Of a stretch of 64,000 nt of DNA, positions 34,850-39,150 are shown one piece after another. The stretch covers positions 1,116,001-1,180,000 of the forward strand of contig OZ251237.1 in NCBI GenBank assembly GCA_965240325.2. Direction: 5' to 3'. The DNA comes from Rebecca billardiae RCC1528 (Eukaryota; Protista; Haptophyta). The stretch's first letter is position 1. Each line of letters opens with the position of its first letter. The notes beneath the pieces are model-generated. The model searched no databases. It saw nothing but the letters and a program-made list of their open reading frames with translations, and was not told the DNA's origin. A program made the position numbers and the translations under genes.

Positions 34850-36301
34850 TCAGATCATGTCGACCTCGGGGATGTACGGATCGCCGCGGCATGCGGACGT
34901 GAAGAGCTCGTGCCGGATCTCGGGCGTGATCTGCTGGTGCGTGTGCTTGCGCAGGACGGGCTTGAGGTCCTCCTTCTGCTCCTGCGTGAGCTCGAGCTTG
35001 TAGTGCTGCGCGAAGACGAGCAGCGACTGGTGCCAGATGACGGGGAGCTCGTGGTCGACGTCGTGGAACCCGGCGAAGTAGTCGGCGAGCGCGTCGACCA
35101 CGCGGTACGGCAGCGCGTACTTCTTCATGAGCAGCGTGCGCATGAAGAGGATGGACGCGCCCGAGAGCGGCATCTCGGTGAGCTTGAGCAGCGTGACGGA
35201 CGAGTGCATCGCCGGCACGGAGACCTTGCCGAGCACGGAGCACACGATCATCGCGTGCAGCAGCGAGCACCGCTCCTCGCACATCGGCAGCACGATGCCC
35301 TTGAAGAAGGCGGCCGGCTTGTACACCGCCTTTTTCAGCGCCATGTAGTAGTGGTAGTTGAGCCGCTTGTTCGCGTCGATGTCGTCGAGCACCGCGGGGA
35401 GCAGCACGAGCGCGTAGAAGCGCTGGGCCATGCGCGGGTTGAGCGACGAGGCGAAGATGCGCGTCGCGGCCGCGCACGCCTGCGGCGACCAGCCTTGCGG
35501 CTGCGTGAGGAAGAGCACATCCTCCCAGTTGGTGAGGCGCGGCACAATTTTGAACGCCTTGGGCAGCTTGCCCGCGCGGTACCGCCGCAGCAGCTCGCCG
35601 ATCGAGGAGTAGACCTGCACGACCTTGTCGGGGAGCGGCTCTGCGCCGCCAGCAGCCGCAGAGCCCCCGCCACCCGCGCCGCCCGCGCCAGCCACGCCCG
35701 CGGTGCCGGCGGCCGCCTCCCCCGTGTGCTCCGCGAGCTTCTCCATGATCACGTCGGCGAGCGTGCGGCGCGCGCCGGTCTCGCTGGGCATCAGCCGCGC
35801 GAGCAGGGCCTCGTCGGCCTCGTCCACCTCGACTTCCTCCATCTCCTCCTCCTCCTCGCCGTCCTCGCCGCCGAACCCCAGCCCCTCGCCGTCGTCCATG
35901 TCGCTGTCCACGTCGTCGTCAAAGCCTTTCGCCGCGGACGCAGATCTGCGCGCAGCCAGCTGGCTGCCTTGCGCCTCCGCCTCGAACTCTTCCTGCTGCG
36001 CGCGCGCCTCGCGCATGATCTTACGGCTGAGGTCGGCTGGCACGCGGGCGTCGTCATGATCGCCCTGCTCGTCCTCGTCCTCGTCACCCTCGCCGCCGCG
36101 GCGCCCGCGGTGGGCCGACTGCGCGCGCGGCCGCTCGCCCGAGGCGCGCCGCTGCCGTTTCGTGGACGCAGCGGGGCGAGGGCCGGCGCGTTTCTCTCCA
36201 GAAGCGGCTGGGCGGCCGCGCGCGGGCGCAACGCGCCCGCGCTCAGCCTCCCGGCCGCGCGGGGCGCTGCGGGCCCGTCCAGGGCTTGGGGCGCGTGCCA
36301 T
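34850..36301 (-). CDS. BYSL: Bystin / Enp1 (40S biogenesis factor)
   Basis: RTLADVIMEKL, YRAGKLPKAFKIVP, ALKKAVYKPAAFFKGI, KKYALPYRVVDAL, LPVIWHQSLLVFAQHYK, ITPEIRHEL. Confidence 0.96.
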   Translation of the reverse strand: MARAPSPGRARSAPRGREAERGRVAPARGRPAASGEKRAGPRPAASTKRQRRASGERPRAQSAHRGRRGGEGDEDEDEQGDHDDARVPADLSRKIMREARAQQEEFEAEAQGSQLAARRSASAAKGFDDDVDSDMDDGEGLGFGGEDGEEEEEMEEVEVDEADEALLARLMPSETGARRTLADVIMEKLAEHTGEAAAGTAGVAGAGGAGGGGSAAAGGAEPLPDKVVQVYSSIGELLRRYRAGKLPKAFKIVPRLTNWEDVLFLTQPQGWSPQACAAATRIFASSLNPRMAQRFYALVLLPAVLDDIDANKRLNYHYYMALKKAVYKPAAFFKGIVLPMCEERCSLLHAMIVCSVLGKVSVPAMHSSVTLLKLTEMPLSGASILFMRTLLMKKYALPYRVVDALADYFAGFHDVDHELPVIWHQSLLVFAQHYKLELTQEQKEDLKPVLRKHTHQQITPEIRHELFTSACRGDPYIPEVDMI

Positions 36302-36459
36302 GCTGGCCCTGGAATCGCGCGTCGGACGTCCACGCGGTCCTCGCGCCCGGCGCAAAAGCAGATGAGCCGGATCCGGGCAGCCATCGTGCTTCCGCCGGCA
36401 GGGGCGGTGAAAACTCTCGAAACGGCTGCTTCAACCACCACCCGGCCTTGGCCGGGCCG

Positions 36460-37092
36460 ATGCTCCACATCCACGAGGACGTGCCGCGGCGGCGCGCGGC
36501 TGGATCAAGGCCGAAGGCCGTGCAGAAGGCAGTGTCCAGCTTCGATGCGCCCTCTGGCAAGAGCGCCGCCCCGCCCAAGCCGCGGCGTGCTCTCGGTGAT
36601 ATCACCAACAAGGGGCTCAAAGCTGGTCATGCCGGTGCCGGATCGGTGCCAAACGGCAAGCAGGCCTTGAAGGCTGACATGCCCGCCCGCGCAGCGACGC
36701 GTGCGATCGATGGGGACATCGCCACAGAAACCTGCTTCCCGGCAGAGCCATCCGTCATCAGCATCGACCCCTACCACTTTGACCTGGATGCTTGCGTCGA
36801 GACGGTTCTGGCATATCGTGCGCCGGACATCCCCGCAGCCGGAGATGGGGACCATTCGGCGCTGGACGAGCTCCTGTTCGGCATGCCGCCGCCGCCATTG
36901 CAGATGGAGAGCATTGATGGCGTCTCACGACTTGCACCTGCTCCGCCCTCGACGGCAGACCTGCTCGGCGACGAGATGGGCGCCGGCTGCGAGTTCATGC
37001 GCATTCCTGATGCGCTGCCCGAGACCGTGGGCATCGATGCCACGGGATGCGTCGCGGACACTTCCGACGACGACATGCAGCTTGACGACTGA
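36460..37092 (+). CDS. D-box-containing small disordered protein, securin/PATRONUS-like, 210 aa
   Basis: N-terminal LHIHED, D-box RRALGDITN (36583-36609), DIATETCFP (36715-36741), then an acidic, Pro-rich C-terminal half. Confidence 0.6.
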   Translation: MLHIHEDVPRRRAAGSRPKAVQKAVSSFDAPSGKSAAPPKPRRALGDITNKGLKAGHAGAGSVPNGKQALKADMPARAATRAIDGDIATETCFPAEPSVISIDPYHFDLDACVETVLAYRAPDIPAAGDGDHSALDELLFGMPPPPLQMESIDGVSRLAPAPPSTADLLGDEMGAGCEFMRIPDALPETVGIDATGCVADTSDDDMQLDD

Positions 37093-37838: not shown

Positions 37839-38966
37839 TCACAATGTCTCCAGATTGTGCGGCGACACATCGTCCGCTGGCCCGGCGCGCCGCTCGAGCA
37901 GCGCGCGCGTCTCGCTCCAGAGCCACGCGCCCCAGCGCCGCGACGCGGCGGGCGAGGGCCACGCCTCGCTCATGTGGTAGTGCGTCTCCTCCGCTGGCGC
38001 CGGCAGCGCGCCGATGGGCTCGACGGCGAGCGCGACCACTGGCAGCGCGGCCTCAGCTGGTGTCGGGAAGAGGCGAGCGAGCGCGGCGGCGATGAGCCGC
38101 GCGAGCAGCGGCGGCAGGTCGCGCGCGATCTCGGACGCGACGGGGCCGGGGCAGACGTCAAACACCTCGACGCCCTCTGGCCCCCACTGCCGCGCGAGCT
38201 CGTGCGCCCAGATCGCGAGCAGCAGCTTGGAGTAGCCGTACCGCGCCATCGCGTTGGCCACGCCCATCGTGCGCCAGCCGGGTGTCGTGCCGAGCGGCTC
38301 GAGCGGCGCAGCGTGCTGCCGGTGCTCCTCGGAGCCCACAAAGACGATGCGCGCGCGCGGCGCGAGCACGCCGCGCTCGCGCAGCCGCTCGGTCCACAGC
38401 GCGTTCCCGGCAAAGTTGACGCCGAGCGCGAGCTCGAGCCCTTCCGCCGTGCGCGCGGCCGAGACCGGCACGAGGCCGGCGTTGTTGACCAGCGCGTCTG
38501 CGATCACGCCCGCCTCCGCGAGCGCGTCCACGGCGCGCTCGATAGAGTCGAAGCTGGCGAGGTCGAAGCCGGGCACGCCGAGCACGCGCACGCCGTCCGC
38601 GGTGAGCGTGCGGTTGGTCCCGCACACGCGCGAGGCCATCGTCGCCTGCTCCGCCACGTGCTGCTCCAGGTGATGGCTGGGCATTGGCCTGCGATGCGGG
38701 AGCACGAGGGACGCGCCGCCGAGCGCGAGGTGGGCGGCGATCCCGCTGCCGAGGCCGGAGGTGGCGCCCGTCACGATCACGGTGCGGTTCTTCAGTGGCG
38801 ACTCCGCATGAAGCCGCGCGGCGAGCGCTGCCATCCGGTCGCCGTTGCGTCTGCGCACTGCGTACGCGCGCATGAGCAGCTCGGGCGTGCTGCTGCCGTT
38901 GAGCATGAGCCGTGCGGCCACAGAGCACGCCGCGACGAGCACGACGAGGAGCTTCCAGGCAGCCAT
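37839..38966 (-). CDS. Short-chain dehydrogenase/reductase (retinol dehydrogenase/WWOX-like) with a signal peptide
   Basis: IVTGATSGLG, DLASFDSI, LVNNAG, VFVGSEEH, YGYSK, CPGPVAS. The N-terminus is MAAWKLLVVLVAACSVAA. Confidence 0.9.
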   Translation of the reverse strand: MAAWKLLVVLVAACSVAARLMLNGSSTPELLMRAYAVRRRNGDRMAALAARLHAESPLKNRTVIVTGATSGLGSGIAAHLALGGASLVLPHRRPMPSHHLEQHVAEQATMASRVCGTNRTLTADGVRVLGVPGFDLASFDSIERAVDALAEAGVIADALVNNAGLVPVSAARTAEGLELALGVNFAGNALWTERLRERGVLAPRARIVFVGSEEHRQHAAPLEPLGTTPGWRTMGVANAMARYGYSKLLLAIWAHELARQWGPEGVEVFDVCPGPVASEIARDLPPLLARLIAAALARLFPTPAEAALPVVALAVEPIGALPAPAEETHYHMSEAWPSPAASRRWGAWLWSETRALLERRAGPADDVSPHNLETL

Positions 38967-39150
38967 GATTTGGGGGTGGTGCAGAGCGTACGGGCGTCCG
39001 TCCATGGTGGGTGTCTTCCCAGTCCGGATCCGCAAGTTGTGTGCAGCAGCAAGCAGCAAGCAGCACCGGACCAGCAAGGAAGCGCCGCTTCGTCACCGGC
39101 CGTCACCTTGACGCGGCGGCAGATTCCGCGGCGGACGTGCGCGAAAACCC

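Follow-up and report, generated by a model that had tools for sequence, protein, structure and literature searches.

A probable haptophyte securin with a putative, metazoan-like pseudosubstrate patch

The forward strand of the 64,000-nucleotide stretch of Rebecca billardiae DNA analyzed here (the window) carries, at positions 36460-37092, a gene whose 210-residue product is probably a haptophyte securin, that is to say a separase inhibitor. The product is small and predicted to be disordered, it harbors a D-box in its N-terminal part and, at the sequence level, it displays a patch built around an invariant glutamate in which arginine is absent from the residue that separase would cleave after. 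Each of the computational tests of this reading either fits it or is neutral, and the securin assignment is supported. The gene is most likely a divergent new member of an already-known securin family.

The coding sequence (36460..37092, +) is intron-free and consists of a single exon of 210 codons and the stop codon. Its translation contains the strings MLHIHED, FDAPSGKSAAPPKPRRALGDITNK, DIATETCFPAEP, YHFD and MPPPPL, so that the motifs quoted in the initial annotation are all present, and the basic N-half and acidic C-half described there were also found: residues 1-80 have a pI of 11.4 (15 K+R versus 5 D+E) and residues 81-210 a pI of 4.05 (4 K+R versus 28 D+E). The GC content of the three codon positions of this frame is 0.70/0.52/0.74, a coding pattern for a GC-rich genome, and on a Logan contig a gene called independently has the identical start and stop. 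Overlapping ORFs in the other frames are many, as is usual for GC-rich DNA, and none of them was called as a gene. Because six full-length homologues align with the product from the first methionine to the acidic C-terminus, the frame is more than a chance ORF; it is a real gene, conserved in Pavlovales. The protein is predicted to be disordered by AF2 run with the family alignment (mean pLDDT 52.9, pTM 0.17), the model containing two short helices only, at residues 109-118 and 134-140. The ESM Atlas model of the Diacronema lutheri orthologue (P0007) has a pLDDT of 0.48.

Upstream, the gene lies head-to-head with a bystin (ENP1) gene at 34850-36355 (-) (Pfam Bystin, E 3.7e-116), whose start was placed by the gene caller at about window position 36016, leaving an upstream region of about 440 bp common to both genes. 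A short-chain dehydrogenase gene (37839-39077, -) is located tail-to-tail on the other side. An AACGG core (GAAACGGC) is found at window positions 36421-36425, upstream of the ATG. Such a core stands 35 to 54 bp before the start codon in the window, in D. lutheri (L001, about 54 bp, GAAACGGC) and in the prymnesiophyte locus L004 (about 35 bp, opposite strand), for a chance expectation of 0.3-0.8 per 300 bp derived from the measured background. In plants, AACGG is central to the M-phase element MSA/Myb3R, and its presence here may be taken as a weak, post-hoc hint at G2/M regulation.

The relatives of the 210-residue protein are all haptophytes, not green algae. A word-indexed search yielded six full-length homologues of 198-223 residues, with 36-44% identity in the aligned part and E values from 8e-16 to 1.5e-6, among them those of Pavlovales sp. 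CCMP2436 and of D. lutheri (KFE25_000951, P0007). The seven Pavlovales sequences form alignment A1. When the A1 profile was run exhaustively as an HMM against 1.84 billion representative proteins, 13 matches were obtained below 1e-3 and, leaving out the long multi-stretch matches P0008 and P0010, these are haptophyte-type relatives only. The new short matches (P0009 and P0011-P0014) each carry the family D-box, and P0009, P0011 and P0013 carry the ExxFP patch as well. When the word search was repeated with a broader alignment, more distant relatives of about 320-380 residues were obtained, which form a prymnesiophyte branch with Isochrysidales members from Isochrysis galbana, Tisochrysis lutea and Emiliania huxleyi (EMIHUDRAFT_218240). 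Compared by hhalign, the two branches match with a probability of 97.9% (E 3.8e-13), and the 85 matched columns extend from the D-box across the central patch and core. Further alignments were A3 (17 haptophyte sequences), A4 (a 42-column core only) and A5 (the prymnesiophyte N-half).

Conservation in A1 is arranged in islands. These are the N-terminal MLHIHED, the stretch GK..A...PRRALGDITNK, D84 and the central block E90..F93-P94..P97...S101.D103....D108-L109-D110.....V116-L117.Y119, followed in the C-terminal part by L135, L158.P160, L186-P187 (LPE or LPD)..V190..D193..G196 and M206 in the acidic tail. In the 17-sequence alignment a single column is invariant, E90; M1, the D-box residues R42, R43, L45, G46, D47 and N50, and P94, P97 and D103 are nearly so. 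No synteny was seen between the window locus and those compared with it: the window gene adjoins bystin, and the P0007 and P0005 genes adjoin an NmrA-like gene. At the loci of D. lutheri and of P0005, a Logan relative (L001, L010 and L011), the orthologue stands beside this divergently transcribed NmrA-like gene. Since the window gene has no such neighbor, it has been relocated within Pavlovales.

The canonical D-box (RxxLxxxxN) is RRALGDITN, residues 42-50 (36583..36609, +), situated in the basic N-terminal third of the protein. It is invariant in Pavlovales and approximately invariant in the 17 members, and in alignments it falls on the D-boxes of human cyclin B1 and human securin. Its resemblance to RTALGDIGN of cyclin B1 is close, the RxALGDIxN flavor being near-identical and lying in both cases in an N-terminus that is basic and disordered, and the highest-ranking PDB match of the family is cyclin B1. 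Together with the frequency of long chance ORFs in GC-rich DNA, this could suggest that the ORF is the N-terminal fragment of a cyclin B, the opening exon of a cyclin gene that extends further, or a spurious frame. Such an origin is barely credible, because the starting methionine is common to homologues from at least eight other haptophyte sources, the homologues within Pavlovales finish at the same acidic tail directly before the stop, in D. lutheri the gene stands by itself as one exon with other genes on both sides, and the codon-position GC pattern is a coding one. Furthermore, no Cyclin_N match was obtained in the window protein or its family, and a Pfam scan of the 210-residue protein and of its upstream-extended ORF gave no domain, hence no cyclin box, as the initial annotation had stated. 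Unlike cyclin B, the window protein ends about 160 residues past the D-box in an acidic tail.

A second putative degron is located at the extreme N-terminus. LHIHED, residues 2-7 (36463..36480, +), was identified in alignments A1 and A3 and by motif scan; it is approximately invariant in Pavlovales and confined to them. It fits the key positions 3, 4 and 6 of the ABBA consensus Fx[ILV][FHY]x[DE], which occurs in APC/C regulators as well as in substrates (PMC5179498). No KEN box ([KDSN]EN) occurs in Pavlovales, the window protein included, and HED/LHIHED is found in its place; the prymnesiophyte relatives carry DEN or SEN at about residues 9-13 (MLNIAxxNDENGP), in alignment with LHIHED. LHIHED could be a degenerate KEN-type box or an ABBA-type Cdc20-binding replacement. 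It is a tentative and rather doubtful proposal that the pavlovophyte securins replaced an ancestral KEN/DEN, kept in prymnesiophytes, with M-LHIHED as an N-terminal ABBA-type Cdc20-binding motif. It is a degron of the ABBA type that allows cyclin A to be degraded under an active spindle checkpoint. If the replacement were true, the class of the Pavlovales would have a different wiring of the timing of securin destruction, and hence of the link between anaphase and the checkpoint.

Securin is defined less by its sequence than by a pattern made of KEN and D boxes and an invariant glutamate in a conserved patch (Cromer et al., PMC6690013), and this glutamate acts as a pseudosubstrate in the separase active site (PMC6690013). 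In human securin the patch is 113-EIEKFFP, and the change of 118-FP into RE turns the inhibitor into a separase substrate (PMC6858450), which places E115 at P4 and F118 at P1. Aligned in the human register, the putative patch of the window protein is TETCFP, residues 89-94 (36724..36741, +), with E90 at P4, F93 at P1 and P94 at P1'. The distance from D-box to glutamate is 48 residues in the window protein and 51 in Isochrysis. In the family the patch has the form [IVT]-E-x-x-[FHP]-P with the consensus PPIERMFP: most Pavlovales have IERMFP, the Isochrysidales IE[RH]FFP, and other members IESFHP, IEHSHP, VEHYPP or VERMHA. TETCFP of the window protein is the most divergent of all when compared with IERMFP. 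Conservation of DIATETCF across related algae had been put forward in the initial annotation as a check on the securin reading; the E90, F93 and P94 core of this string is conserved and its D-I-A part is not. The resemblance to the FDAP of human securin proposed at the same time is a coincidence, as this string is present in the window protein only and is not conserved in the family.

The overall organization is that of metazoan securin (human PTTG1; PF04856; 7NJ1 chain B): about 200 residues without a fixed fold, the N-part being basic and bearing the degrons and the C-part being acidic. In human securin the C-part binds separase, and in the haptophyte proteins it is the putative separase-binding part. 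As in the human protein, the D-box is followed by the patch in the same register, I-E-[KR]-[FM]-F-P, with glutamate at P4 and Phe-Pro in place of Arg-X. The prymnesiophyte relatives further resemble it by a [KD]EN near residue 10 and an [LV]PE soon after the patch. The window protein departs from it by the HED/ABBA-like LHIHED where human securin has KEN, by TETCFP in place of IEKFFP, by DLD at the LPE position and by an LPE 92 residues on.

Directly after the patch, residues 95-119 (36742..36816, +) are conserved in the alignments and by hhalign (P97, S101, D103, D108-L109-D110, V116-L117 and Y119), contain the AF2 helix 109-118 and are a candidate for the start of the separase-interacting segment. 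The DLD of the window protein sits at the aligned position of the VPE/LPD of its relatives, the prymnesiophyte VPE or LPD (SGIVPEE, SGLLPDE) being found 16-20 residues past the patch. In human securin the LPE at 130-132 blocks an exosite; the LPE role has been described for both securin and Scc1, with a reported spacing of 11-14 residues in securins and 50-100 residues in substrates (PMC6858450). The LPE position varies among securins, according to a survey preprint (bioRxiv 10.1101/2024.01.07.573240). At the canonical distance of 11-14 residues past the patch, LPE is missing from the window protein; one occurs at residues 186-188 (37015..37023, +), 92 residues past the patch, where LP[ED] is invariant in Pavlovales. 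By analogy, this LPE is possibly an exosite-docking motif at a non-canonical distance. The protein ends with an acidic C-terminal tail, residues 200-210 (37057..37089, +), with the invariant M206 and the family consensus EMELD in A1.

This late LP[ED] lies nearer to the substrate spacing than to the securin one, and could point to a protein that docks on separase by patch and LPE as a substrate or as a targeting or chaperoning cofactor and not as an inhibitor. We regard this as very improbable. The P1-equivalent residue (Glu+3) is F, H or P and is arginine in none of the 17 members, and a proline follows at P1' in 16 of the 17, and separase, with its known ExxR specificity, is therefore not expected to cut here. 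Since securins are also known to chaperone separase, this alternative overlaps with the securin reading.

If the protein is a securin, as we favor, the following mechanism can be proposed. From S phase until metaphase, the C-terminal two thirds of the protein, which are acidic, would lie extended along separase, and residues 89-94 would occupy its active site by mimicking the cleavage site of the cohesin subunit Scc1, with E90 in the P4 pocket. F93-P94 would stand in place of the arginine and the following residue required for cleavage and, as they replace the cleavable residues, the site is proposed to be blocked and the protein to stay uncut. Additional contacts with separase could be provided by SxD...DLD, by helix 109-118 and by the LPE at 186-188. 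At anaphase onset, APC/C-Cdc20 would recognize the D-box, probably aided by LHIHED; the securin would then be ubiquitinated and destroyed, separase would be freed and cohesin would be cleaved.

The relationship of the family to known securins was examined by database searches. Unlike human securin, none of the 17 members matches Pfam PF04856 (Securin), even at E values up to 10; no securin, cyclin or other Pfam domain was found in these members, except a weak UIM in the prymnesiophyte ones. A PDB search with the single window sequence gave nothing. The A1 profile gave non-significant matches to cyclin B1 D-boxes only, and no securin at E up to 10. With the 17-sequence A3 profile and all PDB chains, four sequences were obtained below E 10: two constructs of cyclin B1, matched in the D-box region only (E 0.002-0.003), then in third position human securin 7nj1_B (E 0.007), and an Hsl1 D-box peptide. 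Cyclin B1 N-termini come slightly above securin because of the D-box. In the 7nj1_B alignment, RKALGTVN and PEIEKFFPF pair with the family D-box and with ppiErmfPa, with one 9-residue insertion on the human side. The A4 core-only and A5 prymnesiophyte N-half profiles did not retrieve any securin at E up to 10. The 7nj1_B match is marginal, weak and unstable across profiles and, as the A1, A4 and A5 profiles are without securin, statistical homology to metazoan securin is not claimed.

The ESM Atlas feature searches gave leads in the same direction. For P0007, chordate securin was the only Pfam-bearing cluster among the 30 nearest listed (0.90; 175/256 features shared), and for residues 1-145 of the Isochrysis protein P0017 the Securin cluster ranked second (0.87). 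For the window protein, with named clusters only, two family-less arthropod clusters of about 180 residues came first, followed by a mollusc 'Securin' (0.89) and chordate securin (0.88). Securin is the only recognizable family in these three queries, with scores of 0.87-0.90, to be read knowing that 4-10% of shuffled proteins score 0.9 and that the recognition value of the window protein is low. Such scores are leads and not proof, and the convergence of the three queries on securin is notable. The securin assignment made in the initial annotation stands on E90 in an ExxFP register about 48 residues past a canonical D-box, on disorder, on the marginal 7nj1_B match and on these Atlas look-alikes, the homology to PF04856 not being statistically established.

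As homology to securin is not statistically solid, a haptophyte-specific APC/C substrate or regulator has to be weighed, such as an Acm1-, Mes1- or OSD1-like pseudosubstrate inhibitor, in which D-box and LHIHED would bind Cdc20/Cdh1 and ExxFP a partner other than separase. No element of the family is conserved more strongly than the D-box, the highest-ranking PDB matches are to cyclin B1 in its D-box region, LHIHED conforms to the ABBA consensus of APC/C regulators and substrates, and the window protein possesses a GxEF-like GCEF followed by MR. We nevertheless consider this explanation unlikely: the ABBA-like LHIHED is limited to Pavlovales, the one invariant residue lies outside the degrons, in the ExxFP patch and in the register of the securin pseudosubstrate, and the only named look-alike families are securins. 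GCEF-MR is found in the window protein and in none of its homologues, and the C-terminus is LDD, without an MR tail.

The plant APC/C inhibitors OSD1 and UVI4 (GIG1) have a conserved GxEF box and a C-terminal MR tail besides the D-box. GCEF, residues 176-179 (36985..36996, +), belongs to a window-only insertion. Because it falls in a gap of all six Pavlovales homologues, an OSD1/UVI4-like identity was dropped; the C-terminus of the family is acidic, ending in [EM]ELD or LDD.

The securin reading also finds a parallel in plants. Like PATRONUS1/2 and rice RSS1, the haptophyte proteins are fast-evolving and disordered and combine a D-box of the RxALxDITN type with a mid-protein glutamate patch, and relatives carry DEN/KEN. 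PATRONUS has been recognized as a securin despite the lack of BLAST similarity to animal and fungal securins (PMC6690013). The plant patches differ, ExFLH[DN]H in dicots and WA[KR]xG[VI]E in monocots and algae versus PPIE[RH][FM]FP in haptophytes, the latter being closer to the metazoan one. No PATRONUS relative was recovered in the family profile searches.

Securin evolves fast and was long held to be confined to animals and fungi. Eme et al. 2011 found it in Metazoa and Fungi only (PMC3195147), and it was recognized in plants by Cromer et al. 2019 (PMC6690013). According to the survey preprint, which combined iterative HMM searches with scans for the KEN, D-box and LPE motifs and for the separase-interacting segment, securin is far wider spread than earlier appreciated; in its table Diacronema lutheri and Gephyrocapsa oceanica each have a single securin and a single separase, and the securin count of Prymnesium parvum is 0 (bioRxiv 10.1101/2024.01.07.573240). 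In view of these counts, the claim of the initial annotation that no securin is known in this lineage is outdated, and the gain of the present analysis is incremental. P0007 and the Emiliania-type protein are natural candidates for the haptophyte securins of the survey. The survey warns that short linear motifs can be produced by convergence, and it gives no description of haptophyte-specific features such as LHIHED or the prymnesiophyte UIM (bioRxiv 10.1101/2024.01.07.573240). Four features appear to be undescribed: the single invariant glutamate, the metazoan-like PPIE[RK][FM]FP patch, the loss of KEN for LHIHED in Pavlovales and the UIM-like helix of prymnesiophytes.

The family provides a concrete candidate separase inhibitor for an ecologically major algal phylum, which comprises coccolithophores and Pavlovales. 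An invariant glutamate in a metazoan-like ExxFP patch is a phylogenetically distant data point on whether securin goes back to the last eukaryotic common ancestor or is a product of convergence, and IERMFP, IEHFFP, IESFHP, VEHYPP and TETCFP constitute a natural series of pseudosubstrate variants for the study of separase specificity.

Two further observations were made. The prymnesiophyte members contain several [ST]Px[KR] sites and, about 90 residues past the pseudosubstrate patch, a UIM-like helix (EAEQLEAALAISL[ST]DF; P0013, P0017-P0019, P0021 and P0022, e.g. L004:1811-2776), which the window protein and the other Pavlovales lack. Weak Pfam UIM_2 matches were obtained in five prymnesiophyte members (best E 0.026), and we know of no ubiquitin-interaction motif described in any securin. 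Finally, the 213-residue protein P0026 of the glaucophyte Cyanophora paradoxa (EukProt EP00741), retrieved at E 0.08 only, carries KEN at residues 8-10 and KPRRALGDITN and is without the ExxFP patch; it is possibly a securin-like protein from a different lineage.
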